From: Perkinsus chesapeaki ATCC PRA-425
Taxonomy: Eukaryota; Protista; Perkinsozoa
Assembly: GCA_013115145.1 (NCBI GenBank)
Contig: JAAPAO010000052.1
Span: 1 to 64,000, forward strand
Direction of reading: 5' to 3'
Length of the DNA: 64,000 bases
The notes beneath the pieces are model-generated. The model was not told where the DNA came from, ran no database searches, and worked only from the letters and a program-made list of their open reading frames with translations. Positions 3,689-28,132 of this stretch are shown in pieces (within the stretch, counting starts at the first letter, position 1; each line of letters starts with the position of its first letter). Made by a program: the position numbers and the translations under genes.

Positions 3689-4149
3689 GCGAAAGCAACT
3701 TCATCCTCTCTCCGATCGCATTTACCTTTAGTTCCGAGTCGCAGGGTGAAGTACGTGTTCGGTACTGCGCGTGGAGCAGGATAGCTCTACAAGTGTGCTT
3801 GTATATGTAACGCCCGATATCACTCTTGCGTATCGGCTCCTTCTGAATTCCGATAATTCTTGTGTTCTAGTTGTGCGCGTGTTACTTCGAATTCCGAGTT
3901 TTGAGTTCAAACTTTGAACGCGAAGCATTCTGAAGAGCATAACGAGCCCTCTAGCTTGTATGGCCTCCAGACTAGAACAGAATAACTCAATACAATTGAA
4001 CTCATCATTAGGCCGTGGCTAACGCGAGTGATTCATCCTGTCTGCTCTGAGCAACCTGATGACAATGTAAACTACTTTATGTAATCGAATTCTCTTTAGT
4101 TGATTTCGTCTCACTTTGTTGGCTGCATAAACAGACTCCAATAGGGGCG

Positions 4150-5900
4150 GATCAGACACCTTGCCATCTTCTATATATCTGCAGTACCCTTATAATATGT
4201 GTATCAACGACACCGAGCTACTTCACGCAAGCTGCGACTATCTCATTCCTTGCCACTTCGTTATCCCACAGTAAGCCTATCGCCGTCTGAAGTTCCAGTA
4301 CTCCCCGTTGGATCATCCCTTGTTCGCAGAGAGCGCATCCATACAGCCAGTGGGCAGAACCTGCTATCGACGCAGTTAGTAAAATGCTCTGAGCATTGGG
4401 TACACGGTGAGTCACCGTGTGCCTAACCATCACCGCTAGCTTCGATCTCCAGAGCTCTCGAAGCTGCCGCTTCCGCTAGAGTTGGAATTTTGTTGGATAG
4501 CCAGGCAAATCCCAGTTCGGCCAGCAGTTTAACCTGAGGTGATGGAGCTTGCTACCATCAGTTTGATGGCATCAGAGGGTAACCACCCTACATTCACCGG
4601 TTCATTAATCATATACAGATCAAAACATCGACGGGGCTGTCTCAGACCTTCCTCGAAGGGCCCTCCACGGAGGAGAACCTAATGTAGTAGTAGAGATTGC
4701 ATGAACGAAAAAGATTGTGGTAACTTTACCAGAGACATCAAGCCCCAGCAATCAGCGTGCAACATGGGATGACTGCCGTCCAATTGGCCACTATCACTAG
4801 GGATTCTAGAAGTGTCAGCTAAAGACAATGCCATAGATATAGCCTTCTTCGCCTGAAACGGTGATATTCACTGGTGCAAATATCTTGCCTGAGTCAGCCT
4901 GACCTCCACCCATCTCTCTTGATGAACATAAGTAGTAGATATGTAAAGCCATGCCGTAGCTGTTGGCTGGGATGCCAAAACCTACACGAATTATCGAACG
5001 AAGCTCAGTAACTTCCATACATCCTTTTGACTAACCATCAGAAAGTCTCGAGCTTGGGACCATTTCTTCTTCGCTAGCAGCAATCTAGCGTATTGCAGTA
5101 TTGCCAATAGGCGAAGCTGTCTAGATTCTATCAGATGTGTCCCGTTACTAGGCGTCGAGGGTTATCTACCTGTGGTACTCTCCCTCTGCAAGCCAGGAGG
5201 GGTTGCCTTCAGTAATGCCTCACTGACTTTGCTGTCACCTGCCCCACTACGTGCTAAGCACTCGCCCAACAGGGCCCACGATGAGCAACCTGCAAATATA
5301 ATTGAGGCACCGGGAGAGTTCGTCCTTTTGTGGTGAACTGTTTACGATGAGGTTCCGTAGCAACTATTCGTTCAAGTACTTCAACAGCTCTATCCCACTG
5401 CCTATGCTGTGTAAGACTAACAGCTACCAAATGATGGAACTCACACCACTGCCTACAGATCTGGCTCAGAAATGATGTTGCCCCTGAGAGAACGAGAGTC
5501 CAGTGTCACAGAGCAACCGGGGATCAGCGGAGATCGAGATCAACGGATACATACCTATTTGCTTTCTGATGTCTCTCAATGCCAAGCCAATAAGATCAGC
5601 AAATTGATGAAAACTGTTGTCTACAACAAGCTCCTTGAGCAACGCTAGAGTAGTATGGTCAGACTGTGTCAAATGAAGCTTAGGTGTTGGGACTAAGCTA
5701 TCAATATAAGGGGGCTGCAGAGACTTCTGTGTTACTTGGTGGTAAAAGGTTCATGTATAGCCCAGCCCCAGGGCCACATGCATCTTCATTCCCACTAGTC
5801 CCGATTGATCTAGGGGAATCTTCAGAGAGTGCTTGACTATCATTTTTATTGTCTTCATCTTCATGATGGCCAGCGTCAGCACCATCGAATAGCCTGGATG
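4150..5900 (-). mobile_element. Decayed non-LTR/Penelope-like reverse transcriptase relic
   Basis: One frame with stops gives ASFDTV*PYYSSV (cf. SFDVxSLYTS) and then HWTLVLSGATSFLSQICRQWC (cf. LvL..nyF.f....YrQ..G). YxDD could not be recovered. Confidence 0.4.
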
Positions 5901-8436
5901 TAGCCGCCAGTGGTTATTGGAATAAGCAAGCTAACCTCAGTTTGTCAAATATTTGTTGTTCTGTTTTCATTCCCCGAAAGAATGACTTTTCTCGTGTGGA
6001 TAGCCCAATGTAGCGAGCACAGCCCTCCAGATCACCCTAGGAAGTGACTACTATGAGGAGTTGCATGGAGTTTACCTGCTTATGAAGGTTGATTCCTTTG
6101 ATGAGATTAACAAGCGAATCTGTCATGCCTTCAGCTTCCGTTAACTGAGAAATATATCTTCACCGTAATTTTCACGAGAGCAACCTTTTCAAGGGCTCCA
6201 CCAGCTTCGTTGTACCTATCTCTACTAACCAAGCTACAAGCTAGATAGCACATTGCCTGACAATGGGACTATGCCGATACGGCCGCAATGCGGCCGCCGC
6301 GTTGTCACCTCGCGGTTATAGCCGAGCATGGTGGCTTCCTTCAAGGCATGCTCTGCCATTCTGTTCTGACCTCCTAACCTCCTTAAGAATGCTGAGTATC
6401 TCATCCAAGCCATTTGCCTCATTCCTATTGATGCTTTATGGCCCTCGAGAGTGACTCGATTACCCGCTAGAGACTCTTTGTCTGAAGTGTAGGTAGAGTT
6501 GATGACGATTTGGCGCTTATACTCCCAGGCCGCTGCCTCGTAACTGAGAGGGTTGTCGCGGAAACGCGCCTGGGAGGTAAGCGTACTTGTGGCATATGAA
6601 TTCAGCTTCCCAGGCCAGTCTAATGGACGTGGTGAATGCATCTTCGGAATCGCTTAGAACGAGCGGAATCTGCATAAAGAAGCGAGATGTTATGATGATA
6701 CTATCTGCCAAATCGAACCATCAGACCATAGGCGAGATGGAGTTTGCCGTTGTAATTTACATCATCGGGTGTTCTAGGCGTCCTCAATAGTGCTGATAAG
6801 TGACTAGAGAGTATGGCAAAAGCTTCGCTCTTCAACTCCTCTAGATGTTCCTGAGGGGCTGTGGCCTTTGGAGTTCAGCAGCTGGCTCTCGTACGTCACT
6901 CATGTTGTGGTAAAACTGACTTCCTTTATCCACCATCTCGGATATAACTCTGCATAAAGGAAGAAGCTCCATAGCAGTTTCTATTTAGCATTTGGTACCT
7001 TATGATAGCTGGCCTTAGCATATTCGCTTTCATATCCATCAAGATGTCCTTTATATCCTCCCCTAAGACAGGTACGTTAGAAACTGTCAAGCCATATCCT
7101 CTAACCCCCTTGTTGAAGCACATCGACTATCTGCAACACCGCAACTCTGAAAGCCTCTACAGCATCTTCCTTTTCTCTCTGCACAGGGTGCTTTTTCACG
7201 ACCTGAACGTCGCGTCGTTCGGCCTCCTTGCCTATCTACACCAACTCACATTCTTCTCTACAGCCATTAGGGCAGGTGTGATCGATGGCTCAACAGTGAC
7301 AGCAAGTTTGATTAACCCGGAGCTTGGTCCCTCATCTGCGCTCTGCTCCGTTTTAAGTGGAAACCGAACCGACGCCTGAAAATGGCGTCGAAAGTCATGA
7401 CGACTCCAACGGGCGGACAGTGGAATGCCGAGGTCTGTTATGGCCTTGCTTGAGGAATTGCTTCGAGTCCAGAAGGACTGTCCGAGAGCACCTAGCGTTA
7501 ATGATAATCGGCGGAATCTTCGGCAACGCACTTTTCTATCATATCTTCGACGCGCTTTGCCATTTCCTCGACTTCTATGGCACCCTTATTCCCTGTATGA
7601 GGGAGATCCAAACAGATATGACTGTAACCTGTCTCAACAGTCACCTGCCATAGCCTTCACTTCTTCCTCAAAGTCATCAGTCATCATTAGCTTTAAGAAC
7701 ACTGGTATATAACCAGTGCTATCTATACTCATCAATAACCTCTTGCCTACGTGAGCAGTACTGTTTGATTGATGTTCAAAGAGCACTACGAAAGCTAGGG
7801 TCCTTAACAAGGTAAACTGTATTGTTTGGTTGCCAGATTATCTCGTGATACCTGCTGCTTGCATTGTGGCAGGTCACCGATGATAACAAGTTACGTCCGT
7901 GGAGCAGTCTCGGGGTTAGTATTATCGTTCTCTCTTTCTGGATTCTCCTCTTCATCATCACTAACAGTCTCCTCCTCTTCTTGGCTTTCAACAATTGTCC
8001 CATCAAACGATGTACCCAGTACTTCTACACTAAGCTTTATCTTTCCGCGTAAAGACTAAAGCGCACACTGCTCTGAAGGTGTTAAATCTAGGTCGGGCGT
8101 ACGATGAGCTCTTCGTCGGTCACTATAGCATTATTAAGTGTTATGGCAAGGCGGGTTTGCCCTTCCTTAAAAACAGGCACCACGGGCGTGCTTATATCTG
8201 AATTCAGTTTGTTGATACAACGGACAGTCTAGGAATCGCCACCTTCCATGGTAGATGGTTCAGTGAGAGCATTCTCATCGGGTATAATGTCCGCTGTCGT
8301 CATCCCAGCGCTTAAGCGGGTGATCAGCTGATGGAGGTGTAAATAACCACACAACAGAGGTAGAGCACAGAAAAGGAGTTTGAGCCATTTCTTGATATCT
8401 ATTTATCCGATGAATGATAGACAATAATAATAGTAA

Positions 8437-9504
8437 TTAATCCTTCTTATCGGCTTCACCACTGGCGCTGCCATGCTGGGCCTTAGATGGCTGCTGTCCG
8501 TCCTCATCAGAGTCATCAGCATCCTCTCCACTGGTCCCCATTGACTGGAACCATATAGCAGCGGATGAAGCGCTCTACAACAGGAATGCAGACTAGTCCC
8601 GAAGAATGTCGGTTTTACCTTAGCCGCAGAGCTCATCCAAGAGTATGCGCTTTCCTTAGCCTGGGCAATCGTCGGTGACCAATCCTCCTTCATCTCTGTT
8701 GCCTTGGCCTTTGCTGCATCTAGCATCCCACCTTACTAGGCCCGCATGCCACCCTAGGCTGCCTACCTGCCGCATGAGCTGCTTGTTGACCTAGCTCACT
8801 CTGTTGTAGGCTCTCCAAGTTCTGTGTTGCACCTGTAAGATCCTTCTATGATTCCCGTGTGATGGGTACATACTTGTTCGTAGATTATTATATGTATCCG
8901 ATTCCTGGACATGCTGGATATTCTCGGATCCAATCTCCTTGGCCTATCACAGGGATAATATAACCATTCCTGTACAGGAAAGCCCAACCTTATTAAAGGC
9001 AGAGTAGAAGAAATCACCAGCCTGCTGTAGACCGTTATTAATCTTATCCATTGGTATAGCCTCTGAGATATAACACCCTATCCTTTTCGGGATAGAGTTT
9101 AACCATCTACTGATACTACCTGCTAGCTGCGTGTAAAGGTCGGGGCCGTCGTCATCCTCATCAGCTTGGGAATCCACGTCGTTAGCAGTAGTGGTTTGCT
9201 GTTGTTGCTGTTGTGTGTTCCCCGAACCCTGCGCCCAAATCCCTCATGCCAGCCAACGGTTGAGTTATGTTATTCACCTGACTTTGGGTTGACGGCCTAT
9301 TGACCATATCAGCAAAGGTAGTGTCATCATCAAAGAAGCTATCTACTCCAGAATTCCCCGCTGCCGCGGTTGTTGCCGATGCAGCCTGCATCTCAGGACT
9401 GCGATAGAATGGTGTGCTGCTGAGGCTCGGATGAGGTATTACCTTTGTCCAGATTGGTGCTGCTGATTGGTGGGTTTAGCGATTGATTGTTGATTGATAC
9501 TCAT
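8437..9504 (-). CDS. Multi-exon hypothetical protein (Gln- and acidic-rich)
   Basis: Hand-spliced MSINQQ...SPEMQAAS...DEDDDGPDLY...AKESAYSWMSSAAK|SASSAAIW...DKKD* with GT-AG introns in compatible phase where checked. Confidence 0.6.
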
Positions 9505-9724
9505 ATGAAAAAGTCACTGCAGCGGTGGCCTTTAATAGACTTAACACTGCACATAGGTATTAGACCGTGAATTATTACTGGTCATGAAGAAGTGGCCGTG
9601 AGGGAGGAAGATAAACGTACGGCAAAATGGTAGAAGATTTTGACTAGTACATTCGGCACTAGGATAAAACATGTAGAAGGAAGTTCACTAGAGGAACAGA
9701 ACTGAGGTAGTAATAATGGTAAAG

Positions 9725-11382
9725 TCACTGCTGGCAAGTACTTCGATGGTGACTGAAGGGCTCTGGTCGTGGGCGATGGACCGCTCCAATAGAGTTGTGG
9801 AGATGTCGGCAACATGCCTCAGTGAAGGTAAGTGTTCGCCATAGTGCAGAGCTGTCTGATGCACCACTACAGCATCCAATAACAACACCTAATCCATTAT
9901 AACGGCATTAAGCACTGTTATGTACTTTACATGTAGTCGAGAGCTGCCAGACATGCCTTAGTCTTCGAGTAAGAGGGCTAAGATGATAAGGAACGTGCTT
10001 AACATCAGATCGCTGTAGAGCAGCTAGACATTGCTTCACAGCAAACATATCTATATTAACCGAATACCCTCATAGATGGTTACTACCAACATCACTACCT
10101 GCTAGTACAGTGGACTTTGGATGATCATCCGACAAGTCAGTAGTACCGGCTGTAGTTAGACATACGATGCTGAGGCAGCAACCAAATCATACAACAAGGA
10201 TACATAAGCCTACCAAAGCCGACTTAGCACCCTGCCTTCATCCTGAGTTAAATTGAACTCTATTAAGTGTTGATCAGAAAGTCTGAAAGTCTCTACTTCA
10301 TCGAAGTAGGGCACAGAAGCTTCCAGGGACGTCCATGGTGAAGACTACGATTAACAATGGTTACACCGAGCCCGATTGTTCATTCAATCCACCTCAGGTT
10401 GACGGCTACCATCACTTAGTGATGTGATGCGGTACTCGACATGCCGTCGATTGGTGCTTCTCGGAGATATAATCCCTGTAGCCCGATACCACTCCCTCGT
10501 CATGTTGGCAAGAATCTCACCTAGAGCCTGTCGACACCCAGTATGACCTTATGGCATCGCGCCAACGCCTACCGCATGCCTGCCATCCCCGTGTAGGATT
10601 ATACTGCCCGATTTACCGTTGATGAAGTCTATAGTGATACGGCGAACAGGGCTCTTAGGGCTGACGTAACTACCACTACACACTACCCTATATGTTAGCA
10701 CAGAGACATGCCCTACAGATCATCAATAGAAGCATGCCCATCCATTGTAATGCGACGACACCTTCCACCGGACAACAGGAACCTACCGACTATCTTACGT
10801 TTTGTTGTTGAGTGGAAGCCTAATGCAACAACCTAAACCAGGACAGCAGCCTGTAGGAAACGTGTCCCTTTATGAAGGCGACTGACGTTAGGTGAAGTGA
10901 TAAGAGATGTACAGTCGGTTAATGAGGAACTTTTGGTGCATAGCCAACCCTTAACAATCATTCGAGTTGAGGTGTTCTGAGCTCCTTTTAGAGCTGCATT
11001 GCGGTCAGGGAAGTACCTATTGCCATTCTACCCTACTACACGGCGGCCATTAGTGCTGCCCCACCTTATTAACCGTTCCCGACACGAGGGTACTGGATTT
11101 GTCAATGGTTGAGGTACATACAGACAGCATTCGACTGCCAGACGATGGATTAGCCAATGATAGAACTGAGGGATATAGGGATTATCAAACCCACTTCGAA
11201 TGAGATGTCATGTTTATTCGATATATGGCTGGAGTTATTACTGTCTCCTTGCTTCCAAATTCTTGACATGCTTGGGATAACCCCCGGCATGTAGATGATG
11301 CTAGAAGCACTCTAGACCTCCAATCAAGAAACACCAGAATTGAATATATAGGAATGTTATCTATCAGTGCTTTGGCAGACAT
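9725..11382 (-). CDS. F-box plus degenerate kinesin-motor-like protein
   Basis: N-terminal IDNIPIYSILVFLDWRSRVLLASSTCRGL is F-box-like. C-terminal exons splice in phase to DMFAVKQCLAALQRSDVKHVPYHLSPLTRRLRHVW...TCVVIGCCSGASDSSALWRTLTF (cf. kinesin SL.aL..cI.AL...HIPYRDSKLTRLL...TxMIACxSP...ETLSTLxFA). Confidence 0.7.
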
Positions 11383-11824
11383 AATAAGGAACAGAAACTA
11401 AATCGATCGAATGGGCGCACGAGACTTACATTATGCGCCGAATGGTCTGGGATTGAGGTGTCTCTTGATGTCCCGGGAACTTGACTTGGTTGGATTTGTG
11501 GTTTCTAGGGGTCTGCTGGACACTTTGTAGGGCAAGTAGGAAGTACTGTCCTGTGTCAGGAATAGTTGAACGCGGCTGTAGGGTCGGGGATGGTATCGGC
11601 GGTAGTGGATGCCGTAGAGTATCTTAACCGTTTCAACTAAGATACACTTCTGTAAAGGTACCATTTGATTGACTACGAGTAGAATGATACAGCCGACTTA
11701 AGACGGGATGGAAAGGTGGTGGTTTAGAGATGTTTTATGAGGATATGTTGTTGTAGTTTGTATAATTGTAGTGACCACCTCCGCCGTCGTCCCCTAGTCC
11801 CTCCTAAAGGCCACCGTCTACTAC

Positions 11825-13714
11825 ATGTTCGGAGAAATAGTTATAGAAGAAGGCTCATTCCAGCCGACCAAAACACGCAAACAAAAGTTATTGGATAAAC
11901 GAAAGAAGCGAGGGACTGCACCATCACCACCACCTGCTGCCGTTGCTACTACTGATGATAAATCAAAGCAACACCACCACGACAAGGAGCCAGTACGTCA
12001 GCAGCATGTTACTACTAAGGTGGAAACCGAAGCAACTGCGATACCTTCAACATCGCCTACAGCGACTAGTGGTGTTCCAGTATCAAAGCAGGATAATGTC
12101 CCTAAGGCTGCTGAGATTCCTTCTATTAACAATACCCCTGTCTCCCAGGCAAGCATGCCGCCTCCAGCGCCCCCAGGTGGCCGAGGTCCTCGTAAGGTTG
12201 TTCTACCGACTCCATGTGTTGGTGCTGGTCATACTACTAAGTGCACTGGTAAGGTTGCTCATACTGCACCATCCACTCCACCGAGGACTCATCACCGTCC
12301 AAAGCCAACTCCTCCAGTGGGTGAAGTCTGGCCTAATGTTTGGGATAATGCTCGGATTGCTCCATCTTATTATCGTCAACCTGAGAAGCAGCAGCATACC
12401 ACTCCTGTCATTAGTAAAGAGGTTGATACCCCTACTACTGGTAAGGATGTTGATGATGCTGAAAGGATAAGGGAATTATCTGAAAGTCCCAAGTACAAGC
12501 CGAAGGATGACATCAAGGATGTTCCCGAGGTTGATAAGCAAGAAAAGCATGCTGCTGCTGTTGACGACACTACGACTAAATTACCGGCTAAGAGCATACC
12601 TCCATCAACAAAGCCCGCTGCTCCTGCTCCTCCGTTGGCCATGCCTCCTCCTCCGCCACCACCACCAGTGGCACCTGCGAAGGTATCTACAGTACAGGCT
12701 GGTACAAGCCCGATGAATAGTATCTTGAAGCAGCCTCAAGCCCATCTGGTTGATGCCTCTGTGCAGACAGAGGCCCCGCGTCGGCCGGTTAGTAGAAGCA
12801 TCGAGACTCAGACGGATGCTGTAACTACGACGGAGTCTAGTACTGATATGCCTCCTACACCTCTGGTATATCAATCAGCAGCAGCAGCTGCTACCAGCAC
12901 CTCTACGATGAACCCATTCGGTGCTACTGTTGCTGCAGCAGCTCCACTGGGTATGGAGGGTTTATCGTCACTACTTCCTGATTTCCCCACGATTGCTGGC
13001 CCACCACCTGGTCTCTCTGGGCATGCTGATTCTGCTTATCCTCAGTCCGCAGCCGTCCAGCACCAGATGGGCGCCGCCGGTGGCTCATCCATTAGTGGTG
13101 CTGGTTCAGCGAATGCCAATACTGTTGGAACTGGAGGTATGGCCTACTATGATCCAATGAGGGTTTATAGTACCATGATTTCACTCCAGCAACAGCAACT
13201 ACAACAACAACAGCATACGTCATCGGTTACCCAGCAACAACAGCAACATCAGGGTAATCCAGCAGCGGCATTCTGGGCAGCAGCCAACGCCCCATCAACT
13301 ACACCTCCACTAACCTCGGTTAATATATTCGGTGGTCCTTCTTCGACTCCTAATGATCAACAACAGATGCTACTGCAGCAGCAGCAACAGCAGTCCTCCT
13401 CTGGTGATGGGTATCATGGACAACAACGTTATGAGACTAGTGGAAGCAACAGCAGCAACAACCGCCAATACCAACAATATGAACTTCACAATAGTTCTCA
13501 GCGTGATACTGGCTATGGTGGTCAGCAGCCCCGTGATGGTGGTTATGGTGGTCAGCAGCCCCGTGATGGTGGTTATGGTGGTCAGCAGTCCCGTGATGGT
13601 GGTTATGGTGGTCAGCAGTCCCGTGATGGTGGTTATGGTGTTCAGCAACAGCATTACCAGAGACATCAGAGTGGTCAGTATAGGAGTGGCAATAATAGTG
13701 GAAGAAGATATTAG
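11825..13714 (+). CDS. Intronless 629-aa Pro/Gln-rich disordered protein with C-terminal GGYGGQQ repeats
   Basis: 1.9-kb open frame with ATG; basic N-terminus, poly-P and poly-Q tracts, decapeptide repeats. Confidence 0.8.
   Translation: MFGEIVIEEGSFQPTKTRKQKLLDKRKKRGTAPSPPPAAVATTDDKSKQHHHDKEPVRQQHVTTKVETEATAIPSTSPTATSGVPVSKQDNVPKAAEIPSINNTPVSQASMPPPAPPGGRGPRKVVLPTPCVGAGHTTKCTGKVAHTAPSTPPRTHHRPKPTPPVGEVWPNVWDNARIAPSYYRQPEKQQHTTPVISKEVDTPTTGKDVDDAERIRELSESPKYKPKDDIKDVPEVDKQEKHAAAVDDTTTKLPAKSIPPSTKPAAPAPPLAMPPPPPPPPVAPAKVSTVQAGTSPMNSILKQPQAHLVDASVQTEAPRRPVSRSIETQTDAVTTTESSTDMPPTPLVYQSAAAAATSTSTMNPFGATVAAAAPLGMEGLSSLLPDFPTIAGPPPGLSGHADSAYPQSAAVQHQMGAAGGSSISGAGSANANTVGTGGMAYYDPMRVYSTMISLQQQQLQQQQHTSSVTQQQQQHQGNPAAAFWAAANAPSTTPPLTSVNIFGGPSSTPNDQQQMLLQQQQQQSSSGDGYHGQQRYETSGSNSSNNRQYQQYELHNSSQRDTGYGGQQPRDGGYGGQQPRDGGYGGQQSRDGGYGGQQSRDGGYGVQQQHYQRHQSGQYRSGNNSGRRY
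13501..13650 (+). repeat. 30-bp tandem repeat, 5 copies (RDGGYGGQQP/S)
   Basis: ccgtgatggtggttatggtggtcagcagc/tc units start at 13501, 13531, 13561, 13591 and 13621. Confidence 0.95.
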
Positions 13715-22946: not shown

Positions 22947-24596
22947 ATGGGTCCTGAGATGGTTTTCTTTTTCCTAGTGTTGCAGACGTCAGTGGTCGAG
23001 ACTTCACGTATCCGCTTCATTGTTAATGTAACAACGTATCTTGATCTCGGTATTAAAGACCACAGGAAGGATGCAACGCCTTGTTGGTTGTCATCGGCCA
23101 GGAATACAGAAGGCCTCACTTTACCTGGAATGGACTATAAGACGATATCAATGATTCAGGAAGTGACTGTGGAAGACGGTGCTCGTTATACTGTCACTGC
23201 AATGCCAAACTATCCATATCAATACTTTATGACTACAGAGACTTCAAATCATACCCGCCTGGAGCAGCTCTTCGGAAATGAGGCAGTTTTGGTCTCCACC
23301 GGCGGCCCTGAAGCCGACGTGGTTAATATGAAAGCCGATTGGTCCAAGGAGGCCCTGCTCGGCGATGGCTGGGTGTATGACACCAATGTAACATTTGACA
23401 ACCGCAACCTCAAGCGTTGGACCAAAACTGTTGAGGAGTTCGACAACGAGTCAAGCTTTAATCATTCTGCTTTGTGTCATTCTGGTGTTGGTCCAAATCG
23501 TTGGTATCTCCTAACCGATGAGAATGACCATCCAGTTAGGTCTGATGCAATCAACACTTGTAAAGAGCAGCTCCACCAAACGGCGGAGTTTAGCAAGTTT
23601 GAGGTCGGTGTGTCACTTGCTAGCTCTGCCTTCACCACTAAAGAAGATATCTTCTATCGCTATGATATCTCCCCGGCAAGAAAATTACGAGACTCAGCAG
23701 AGAGGTTAGCACCGCCTGTCGGTCGACTGTATTTAAACAAAGCAGTGCCACACCCAACCTCTGAGACGCATCTTGGTTATGTTAAAGGCTGGGAAGGGTC
23801 TGATTGGTTATCCAATAAGCAACTGCGTGGGGAGAAGAAAGACAGAATCAACTATTTCACAGTTGAAGAGGGCACGGCATCATACAGTTACTTCTATGCC
23901 GACCACCAGAGGCAGCTGGTTGAACTGGTCAAATTTATGTTTCCAACTACTTGCCGAGATAAGCGGACGGGTTATTCCTTTTGCTTGTACATAGAGGTGA
24001 CTGATGTTATGAGAGGGATGCGTGACTTATCAGTCAACGCTGGCTTCAGCATTGTCGATGTCACAAAACCGAATATAGAGGTTACGCTGAGGCTCTTCTT
24101 CCAGGGAACTTTTGATTCGGAGAACCACTTGTTCGACGTCATTCTTGGTCTACAGGCTCAAGGATGTGCTATTGTGTGGCAGCTCGGTGAAGGTATCGCA
24201 CTCTATGCTGCTGTTTGTATAGATGGTCGAGCCAGAGTGGAACATCCCGAATCACCGAACCGTGTGATCGACGTCCGCATAGCTATGTCATTGACTTTTG
24301 GAGTTTCCATGCCAGTAATCGGGGACTTGGCCGACATCACGTTGCAAGGTGCTCTCACCGCCACCATAGACAAGAACATATCTGCAACTGCTTCCATCAT
24401 GTTAATCAAGTCTTTGCTGGTGGCGGGTGTCGGACTGGGAATAAGTGTGACTGGAATGACTAGTAACCTTGACATGAAGACCTGGGACTGGAGTATCGGA
24501 TTCGACCTACTGTGTTGGGTGAATGTTCTTTTCTGGAAGCATACTTGGAGTAAGACCTATAAAATATTTGACACTGGTCCGATCCACATGCGATGA
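22947..24596 (+). CDS. Intronless 549-aa lineage-specific protein with hydrophobic N-terminus, copy 1
   Basis: 1650-bp ORF; near-identical paralog at 26483; signal-peptide-like MVFFFLVLQTSVV. Confidence 0.85.
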   Translation: MGPEMVFFFLVLQTSVVETSRIRFIVNVTTYLDLGIKDHRKDATPCWLSSARNTEGLTLPGMDYKTISMIQEVTVEDGARYTVTAMPNYPYQYFMTTETSNHTRLEQLFGNEAVLVSTGGPEADVVNMKADWSKEALLGDGWVYDTNVTFDNRNLKRWTKTVEEFDNESSFNHSALCHSGVGPNRWYLLTDENDHPVRSDAINTCKEQLHQTAEFSKFEVGVSLASSAFTTKEDIFYRYDISPARKLRDSAERLAPPVGRLYLNKAVPHPTSETHLGYVKGWEGSDWLSNKQLRGEKKDRINYFTVEEGTASYSYFYADHQRQLVELVKFMFPTTCRDKRTGYSFCLYIEVTDVMRGMRDLSVNAGFSIVDVTKPNIEVTLRLFFQGTFDSENHLFDVILGLQAQGCAIVWQLGEGIALYAAVCIDGRARVEHPESPNRVIDVRIAMSLTFGVSMPVIGDLADITLQGALTATIDKNISATASIMLIKSLLVAGVGLGISVTGMTSNLDMKTWDWSIGFDLLCWVNVLFWKHTWSKTYKIFDTGPIHMR

Positions 24597-26482: not shown

Positions 26483-28132
26483 ATGGGTTCTGAAATGATT
26501 TTCTTTTTCCTAGTGTTGCAGACGTCAGTGGTCGAGAGTTCACGTATTCGCTTCATTGTTAATGTAACAACGTATCTTGATCTCGGTATTAAAGACCACA
26601 GGAAGGATGCAACGCCTTGTTGGTTGTCATCGGCCAGGAATACAGAAGGCCTCACTTTACCTGGAATGGACTATAAGACGATATCAATGATTCAGGAAGT
26701 GACTGTGGAAGACGGTGCTCGTTATACTGTCACTGCAATGCCAAACTATCCATATCAATACTTTATGACTACAGAGACTTCAAATCATACCCGCCTGGAG
26801 CAGCTCTTCGGAAACGAGGCAATTTTAGTCTCCACCGGCGGCCCTGAAGCCGACGTGGTTAATATGAAAGCCGATTGGTCCAAGGAGGCCCTGCTCGGTG
26901 ATGGCTGGGTGTATGAGACCAATGTAACATTTGACAACCGCAACCTCAAGCGTTGGACCAAAACTGTTGAGGAGTTCGACAACGAGTCAGGCTTTAATCA
27001 TTCTGCTTTATGTCATTCTGGTGTTGGTCCAAATCGTTGGTATCTCCTAACCGATGAGAATGACCATCCAGTTAGGTCTGATGCAATCAACACTTGTAAA
27101 GAGCAGCTCCACCAAACGGCGGAGTTTAGCAAGTTTGAGGTCGGCGTGTCACTTGCTAGCTCTGCCTTCACCACTAAAGAAGATATCTTCTATCGCTATG
27201 ATATCTCCCCGGCAAGAAAATTACGAGACTCAGCAGAGAGGTTAGCACCGCCTGTCGGTCGACTGTATTTAAACAAAGCAGTGCCACACCCAACCTCTGA
27301 GACGCATCTTGGTTATGTTAAAGGCTGGGAAGGGTCTGATTGGTTATCCAATAGGCAACTGCGTGGGGAGAAGAAAGACAGGATCAACTATTTCACAGTT
27401 GAAGAGGGCACGGCATCCTACAGTTACTTCTATGCCGACCACCAGAGGCAACTGGTTGAACTGGTCAAATTTATGTTTCCAACTACTTGCCGAGATAAGC
27501 CGACGGGTTATTCCTTTTGCTTGTACATAGAGGTGACTGATGTTATACGAGGAATGCGTGACTTATCAGTGAACGCTGGCTTCAGCATTGTCGATGTCGC
27601 AAAACCGAATATAGAGGTTACGCTGAGGCTCTTCTTCCAGGGAGCTTTCGACTCGGAGAACCACTTGTTCGACCTCGTTCTTGGTCTACAGGCTCAAGGA
27701 TGTGCTATTGTGTGGCAGCTCGGTGAAGGTATCGCACTCTATGCTGCTGTTTGTATAGATGGTCGGGCCAGAGTGGAACATCCCGAATCACCGAACCGTG
27801 TGATCGACGTCCGCATAGCTATGTCATTGACTGTTGGAGTTTCCATGCCAGTAATCGGGGACTTGGCCGACATCACGTTGCAAGGTGCTCTCACCGCCAC
27901 CATAGACAAGAACATATCTGCAACTGCTTCCGTCATGTTAATCAAGTCTTTGCTGGTGGCGGGTGTCGGACTGGGAATAAGTGTGACTGGAATGACTAGT
28001 AACCTTGACATGAAGACCTGGGACTGGAGTATGGGATTCGACCTACTGTGTTGGGTGAATGTTCTTTTCTGGAAGCATACTTGGAGTAAGACCTATAAAA
28101 TATTCGACACTGGTCCGATCCACATGCGATGA
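26483..28132 (+). CDS. Intronless 549-aa lineage-specific protein, copy 2
   Basis: Same length as copy 1. I count 16 aa differences (about 97% identity). Confidence 0.85.
   Translation: MGSEMIFFFLVLQTSVVESSRIRFIVNVTTYLDLGIKDHRKDATPCWLSSARNTEGLTLPGMDYKTISMIQEVTVEDGARYTVTAMPNYPYQYFMTTETSNHTRLEQLFGNEAILVSTGGPEADVVNMKADWSKEALLGDGWVYETNVTFDNRNLKRWTKTVEEFDNESGFNHSALCHSGVGPNRWYLLTDENDHPVRSDAINTCKEQLHQTAEFSKFEVGVSLASSAFTTKEDIFYRYDISPARKLRDSAERLAPPVGRLYLNKAVPHPTSETHLGYVKGWEGSDWLSNRQLRGEKKDRINYFTVEEGTASYSYFYADHQRQLVELVKFMFPTTCRDKPTGYSFCLYIEVTDVIRGMRDLSVNAGFSIVDVAKPNIEVTLRLFFQGAFDSENHLFDLVLGLQAQGCAIVWQLGEGIALYAAVCIDGRARVEHPESPNRVIDVRIAMSLTVGVSMPVIGDLADITLQGALTATIDKNISATASVMLIKSLLVAGVGLGISVTGMTSNLDMKTWDWSMGFDLLCWVNVLFWKHTWSKTYKIFDTGPIHMR

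Follow-up and report, generated by a model that had tools for sequence, protein, structure and literature searches.

A gene of Perkinsus chesapeaki predicted to encode a shrunken, catalytically dead kinesin-motor-like domain, with an F-box-like frame upstream

We analyzed a minus-strand locus in Perkinsus chesapeaki ATCC PRA-425, within a stretch of 64,000 nucleotides (nt) covering positions 1 to 64,000 of contig JAAPAO010000052.1 (assembly GCA_013115145.1; hereafter, the window), which an initial annotation had described as an F-box fused to a kinesin-like domain without ATPase motifs. Perkinsus is a lineage of shellfish parasites that forms the sister group of dinoflagellates, is a near relative of apicomplexans and possesses a microtubule-based invasion apparatus. 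On balance, we favor the reading that this is a real, lineage-restricted P. chesapeaki gene for a shrunken, catalytically dead kinesin-motor-like domain, with a 5′ end that is unsettled. The kinesin-like part corresponds to KAF4675083.1 (hypothetical protein FOL47_008258; 248 amino acids, aa), which was recovered by an exhaustive profile search with the exon at 9911–10069 and is the sole member of its own cluster.

KAF4675083.1 is encoded at 10745–9725 of the window. Threading the annotated protein back on the DNA gave seven exons that match all 248 aa exactly and in frame, separated by introns of 47, 45, 48, 44, 48 and 42 nt from 5′ to 3′, with GT-AG ends in 6/6. The C-terminal joints of the initial annotation, which held that the exons splice in frame, agree with these seven exons, while its join to the F-box-like frame is not established. 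The annotated start is the ATG at 10745, so the F-box-like region lies outside the public model. Motifs were mapped by aligning the protein to KIF2C motor domains in MAFFT and by following the order of its secondary-structure elements in AlphaFold2 (AF2), and the exons were as follows.

10717–10745, minus strand: annotated exon 1, MDGHASIDD-; MDGH...DDLY aligns to the kinesin FD..F / ..LY segment.
10573–10669, minus strand: annotated exon 2, β3 and the P-loop relic GKSGSIIL (10594–10617) without GK[ST]; F-I-N-GKSGSIIL-H-GDG in place of kinesin F-A-Y-GQTGSGKT-H-TMGG (GQTGSGKTHTMGG) (threading, alignment).
10393–10527, minus strand: annotated exon 3, α2 and β4 region (threading, AF2 secondary structure, alignment).
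10214–10344, minus strand: annotated exon 4, shortened α3, the switch I relic RLSDQH (10267–10284; NxxSSRSH in kinesins, here a 10-residue deletion and RLSDQ-H, with His alone aligned) and β6–β7 (HLIEFNLT and RVLSRLCIVCL, exons 4–5) (threading, alignment).
10099–10169, minus strand: annotated exon 5, the switch II relic CLTTAGTT (10139–10162) replacing DLAGxE (DLAGNE in the aligned kinesin) (threading, alignment).
9931–10050, minus strand: annotated exon 6, α4 AVKQCLAAL (kinesin-13, ALKECIRAL) and L12/α5 HVPYHLSPLTRRL (9959–9997; kinesin HIPYRDSKLTRLL, the HIPYRDSKLT region) (Pfam, PDB, hhalign).
9725–9888, minus strand: annotated exon 7, β8 CVVIGCCS, α6 ALWRTLTFTEACC, a short tail and the stop at 9725–9727 (Pfam, PDB, hhalign).

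At the sequence level, the kinesin likeness lies in the C-terminal third of the protein. The Pfam Kinesin profile (PF00225) matched residues 156–218 at profile positions 259–322 (E = 5.9e-4), with a score of 19.4 bits that is below the gathering cut-off of 29.3. Exon 6 alone gave E = 0.0019, and across every minus-strand stop-to-stop fragment the α4–α5 exon alone scored with Pfam. Against PDB sequences, 17/17 matches of exon 6 were kinesins, with kinesin-13 first, and the whole protein (phmmer) retrieved nearly all kinesins with E values from about 0.01, among which the kinesin-2 OSM-3 ranked first. Alignment with hhalign to KIF2C gave E = 1.5e-4 over 72 columns at 24% identity; the KIF2C set used here and with MAFFT contained fish KIF2C only and was too uniform for a useful AF2 alignment. 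Among 1.84 billion representatives, the significant matches were KAF4675083.1 itself, one fish KIF2C and one unrelated repetitive protein. Detectable kinesin sequence similarity therefore appears weak and confined to α4–L12–α5–β8–α6.

Structure prediction pointed in the same direction. The ESM Atlas model of the exact protein sequence (predicted template modeling (TM) score 0.70; predicted local distance difference test, pLDDT, 0.65) had kinesin motor clusters as all 10 of its 10 listed neighbors, with query-normalised TM scores of 0.71–0.75 over 213–221 of the 248 residues. AF2 without an alignment returned a pLDDT of 40, which is unusable as a model, and in a Foldseek search of the PDB with this poor model kinesin chains made up nearly all matches and occupied the top 32 ranks (E of at least 0.013; TM score 0.24–0.29). 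Kinesin descent and a kinesin/myosin-type α-β-α fold are thus established at the level of prediction, and the structural match anticipated by the initial annotation was obtained.

The predicted motor is about 90 residues shorter than a normal kinesin motor domain. About 45 internal residues are missing, the α3 region is shortened according to both MAFFT and the secondary-structure order, and the annotated protein has no β1, β2 or loop 2, all of which lie N-terminal of the FD..F segment. The motif losses described initially were confirmed: the P-loop position reads GKSGSIIL rather than GxxxxGK[ST], with the phosphate-binding Gly-Lys-Thr lost; SSRSH of switch I is deleted but for its His; and switch II reads CLTTAG(TT), with the Asp and Glu of DxxGxE gone. 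The L12/α5 element was likewise recognisable as proposed, since HVPYHLSPLTRRL lines up with the HIPYRDSKLT region in kinesins of solved structure. Because the P-loop GK[ST], switch I and the switch II Asp/Glu are lost, the protein should neither hydrolyze ATP nor walk, and its sequence rules out a role as an ATPase or a motor. The β-sheet core and the tubulin-facing α4–L12–α5 elements are still recognisable around a destroyed nucleotide pocket. The product, if made, may be a nucleotide-independent binding or scaffold module, perhaps for tubulin or microtubules. Its ancestor is tentatively placed as a kinesin-13-type motor, because α4 carries K.C, S.TC precedes β8, and kinesin-13 structures rank first for exon 6.

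The annotated part behaves like real gene structure, current or very recent, given that its in-frame path is rare in shuffled sequence and that tiny introns are normal here. When stop-free paths over the 1,021 nt were sought with introns of 40–50 nt and GT[AG]...[CT]AG ends, the real sequence had one, and any such path was present in 1/300 shuffles; paths were also present in about 10% of random 1,021-nt pieces from the gene-dense window. The tiny introns fit the P. chesapeaki genome, as gaps of about 36–67 nt lie between those blocks of a neighboring gene that are conserved in a related lineage. The 248 annotated codons contain no stops or frameshifts, and in a second independent P. chesapeaki DNA sample the locus was identical but for position 10731, a synonymous GCT to GCC change. 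With a codon score trained on the long open reading frames (ORFs) of the window, stop codons excluded, the annotated exons scored −0.007 per codon, which is inside the range of the window's conserved exons; the references were a mean of +0.047 for conserved exon blocks of neighboring genes and −0.120 for chance antisense ORFs. No paralogue was found within the window. The public model is probably truncated at its N-terminus, with the real start further 5′, because its first residues already fall within the motor fold and no stop interrupts its frame over the 29 codons (10746–10832, minus strand) upstream of the annotated ATG, up to a TAG. At the other end of the gene, a 16-nt direct repeat (14/16 identical) is found at 9716–9731, overlapping the stop, and at 9505–9520, at the annotated start of the next gene.

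The F-box-like frame lies 640 nt upstream of the annotated gene on the same strand, and it may or may not be the first exon. Two features make up this upstream region.

11242–11382, minus strand: candidate exon 1, a 47-codon F-box-like frame, LIDNIPIYSILVFLD...TCRGL (ORF and donor read directly).
10746–11241, minus strand: the segment linking candidate exon 1 to the annotated start, either exons or one long intron, with the TAG at 10833–10835.

The candidate exon 1 opens with the first ATG after a stop (11382) and runs up to a GTAATA donor at 11241. Compared by eye with LPxE..I...L....L....V[CS][KR]xW, LIDNIPIYSILVFLD...TCRGL shows two one-residue insertions and has neither the Pro nor the Trp. 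Pfam searches at E ≤ 10 found no family in exon 1 alone, in the read-through frame or in a putative exon 2, and phmmer with exon 1 retrieved nothing relevant from the PDB. Of the two profile matches expected initially, the kinesin one was therefore obtained below threshold and the F-box one was not. With language-model features from the ESM Atlas, exon 1 had a recognition of 2619 and scored 0.90 at best, and F-box or F-box-like domains were present in about 88/100 of the named clusters closest to it; as a control, another frame of this locus (10836–11027, 64 aa) reached a recognition of 1237 and a best score of 0.62, with scattered junk families. This F-box likeness is a lead and not proof, because a score of 0.9 is reached by 4–10% of shuffled proteins, according to the tool. 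AF2 of the isolated 47-mer returned one long helix, which is uninformative about an F-box. The F-box-like N-terminus of the initial annotation thus stands as an ATG frame with language-model likeness, but without a Pfam or PDB match. Pfam found nothing in the frame 10836–11027, and a kinesin β1 noticed there by eye (RMIVKGW...) was dropped, as the language model treats this frame as non-protein.

Joining this frame to the kinesin exons always entails splicing out the in-frame TAG at 10833–10835. There are 27 in-frame three- or four-intron paths from the ATG at 11382, along with alternative short introns, and single 409-nt or two-intron joins are also in frame; the 409-nt join runs from the donor at 11241 to a TTTAG acceptor at 10833, in phase 0 on both sides. 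With introns of 40–50 nt (the gene's own class) or 36–80 nt, no path from the F-box-like frame to the kinesin exons was found. With introns of 36–100 nt, a path was present in 35% of shuffles and, with at most three introns, in 10%, so an in-frame path is statistically unremarkable. Exon 1 scored −0.156 per codon, a value in the range of chance ORFs, and the upstream exons of one three-intron path −0.149; over these 47–140 codons, a weak test, the upstream part reads as non-coding by codon usage, which leans against a coding role. The AG of the TAG (CTGGTTTAG/G) might act either as a 3′ splice site or, just as well, as a spliced-leader acceptor; in the latter case, the annotated ATG would be the first AUG and the 248-aa protein would be made.

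Related loci were reached through the adjacent gene for a 629-aa protein (11825–13714, plus strand) and comprised L002, a scaffold of P. marinus, and L004, a public-run contig belonging to a second Perkinsus lineage. L004 is colinear on both sides of the kinesin-like gene, with window 4099–9183 corresponding to 3779–8807 and window 11836–13183 to 10015–11281. Between the closest DNA anchors (window 9118–9339 with L004 8742–8963, and window 11617–11900 with L004 9770–10079) lie 2,277 nt in the window vs 806 nt in L004. Searches of L002–L004 with the gene by tblastn and blastn gave nothing significant; with a joint E of 2.3, two adjacent weak P. marinus matches (L002 8744–8853) were put down to chance. 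In the 629-aa protein, the window copy is 40–42% identical to the other two, which are 56% identical to each other. On these values, which come from a single neighboring protein, P. chesapeaki would seem to be the outgroup to the other two, so that a gain of the kinesin-like gene on its side and a loss on theirs would be equally parsimonious. At the locus, we found no signs of insertion in the form of mobile-element-type flanking repeats, a B-box, a tRNA relic or an Rfam family.

Several of these results weigh against a real gene with the proposed product. The Pfam score is sub-threshold, and the AF2 model is too poor to use. No homologue other than KAF4675083.1 itself was found in 5.8 billion proteins, and no copy of the gene was seen around the neighboring gene's orthologue in P. 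marinus. The whole 1,658-nt gene, F-box-like frame included, is missing at the L004 site, because the non-kinesin parts of the window interval total only about 620 nt. Two small P. chesapeaki RNA runs gave no contig at the locus, and a search across RNA runs listed none that contains it. As the public model begins inside the fold, the product may be incomplete or unstable. Microtubule binding is a property that we infer, and the L12 Arg and Lys (kinesin-1 numbering) are replaced, PYRDSK having become PYHLSP. The maintained gene of the initial annotation is accordingly unproven, with no orthologue for a ratio of nonsynonymous to synonymous substitutions and with the gene missing at the syntenic site of the related lineage. 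Similar observations would suit a decaying kinesin relic or an over-predicted model, that is, a former kinesin paralogue that lost its catalytic motifs, N-terminus and internal segments, with the 248 aa an ab initio thread and the F-box resemblance due to chance. We regard this as unlikely, though a serious competitor: the orphan status in two very large protein libraries, the absence from the syntenic site, the loss of all three nucleotide-binding motifs and of about 90 motor residues, the in-frame TAG just upstream of the annotated start, the weak codon bias and the two RNA runs with no contig at the locus all speak for it, but at about 24% identity, and that in its best segment, a neutral remnant should not retain a 248-codon frame with six uniform canonical introns (1/300 shuffles), and a language model given the single sequence still predicts a kinesin fold for the product. 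Moreover, no close parent kinesin was detected, and hence the gene is not a young duplicate.

The fusion proposed initially is a refinement of the favored reading. It takes the frame at 11242–11382 as a true F-box exon spliced to the kinesin-like exons, and the product as a substrate adaptor of an SCF (Skp1–Cullin–F-box) ubiquitin ligase, in which the dead kinesin domain would dock on microtubules or recruit tubulin or motors for ubiquitylation. The F-box-like frame is directly upstream on the same strand, with a first ATG after a stop and a good donor; its language-model score and F-box clusters set it apart from the control frame; in-frame joins exist, and the 409-nt intron would also account for the TAG; and the annotated protein begins within the fold with an open frame ahead of it. 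We nevertheless consider this fusion improbable, as exon 1 matches neither a Pfam F-box family nor a PDB sequence, shuffled sequence yields joining paths readily and the 40–50-nt intron class yields none, the upstream exons score closer to chance ORFs than to conserved exons, the public annotation omits the region, and neither RNA support nor an orthologue with an F-box/kinesin architecture was found. A single full-text search of the literature yielded no paper on an F-box joined to a kinesin fold. The claim of one in-frame gene containing both F-box and motor exons is not established, given the TAG that must be removed, the paths in 35% of shuffles and the annotation that excludes the frame. 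Of the proposed SCF adaptor with a non-motile kinesin fold, the dead kinesin fold is retained on the basis of predicted neighbors and motifs, and the F-box identity and the splicing are putative. More doubtful again is an SCF receptor specific to protists, with an F-box fused to an ATP-blind, kinesin-13-derived domain; the dead motor would recognize the substrate or the location and bring ubiquitylation to tubulin or microtubule ends.

Other features of the neighborhood were also recorded. A perfect 12-nt inverted repeat, TAAAGGCCACCG, occurs at 9523–9534 and 11805–11816, that is, 9–19 nt 5′ of the start codons of both genes flanking the kinesin-like gene, and in L002 and L004, too, the core AAGGCCA is found ahead of the ATG in the orthologues of the 629-aa gene; the repeat may be a shared 5′ untranslated region or promoter motif. 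The 629-aa protein is of low complexity, and its two homologues, 56% identical, come from one public run. L004 retains the left-flank synteny of the window, and L002 and L003 (P. marinus) its right-flank synteny; the left flank of L002 is not syntenic with P. chesapeaki. These homologues reflect either two Perkinsus lineages in one sample or a duplication with its breakpoint at the gene. In L002, the upstream region and start of the neighbor's orthologue are duplicated (7397–7693 vs 9651–9947) around a gap of 100 N near 7900–8000, which would be an artefact of the assembly or else a segmental duplication. Further away, two plus-strand ORFs of 549 aa each (22947–24596 and 26483–28132) look like a recent tandem duplication, and the first has a full-length Pfam DUF6740 match (E = 4e-104).

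Among known systems, the α4–L12–α5 exon is matched best by kinesin-13 (MCAK/KIF2C, KIF2A, KLP10A and the Plasmodium 'internal kinesin' 1ry6). Its α4 reads AVKQCL against ALKECI in kinesin-13; as in kinesin-13, β8 is preceded by S.TC, and the motor is internal or C-terminal and not N-terminal. Of the class motifs, KQC stands at the KEC position, and the KVD of loop 2 is missing and not recognisable upstream. Unlike kinesin-13, the P. chesapeaki protein lacks the P-loop and both switch motifs, its domain is shorter by about 90 residues, and the subfamily is tentative, as a kinesin-2 and not a kinesin-13 came first in the whole-protein PDB search. KIF26A/B (kinesin-11) and KIF7/Costal2 provide precedents for the kinesin fold as a static, microtubule-associated scaffold. 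KIF26B is described as lacking ATPase activity yet binding microtubules (PMC3387196), and KIF7 as an atypical non-motile kinesin (PMC12919046). Both groups are large, conserved metazoan proteins with near-complete motors and long tails, whereas the present protein is an orphan of a single protist species, of about 250–390 aa, far more eroded, and with its microtubule binding presumed. The secure part of our findings is modest, namely a single orphan relative of kinesins, very eroded and found in one species. Dead motors of this kind ('pseudo-kinesins') illustrate that a fold built for mechanochemistry can take on a new role in passive binding. An N-terminal F-box followed by a C-terminal binding domain is the standard layout of F-box proteins, which the P. 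chesapeaki gene would share if exon 1 is real, although here the F-box fails every profile test. In known F-box cases the kinesin is bound as a substrate, and one report describes SCF-Fbxw5 as targeting kinesin-13 in trans (PMC8441365); here, the kinesin fold would itself be the receptor domain. Thus, an F-box fused to a pseudo-kinesin, if true, would represent a new way to aim ubiquitin ligases at the cytoskeleton.

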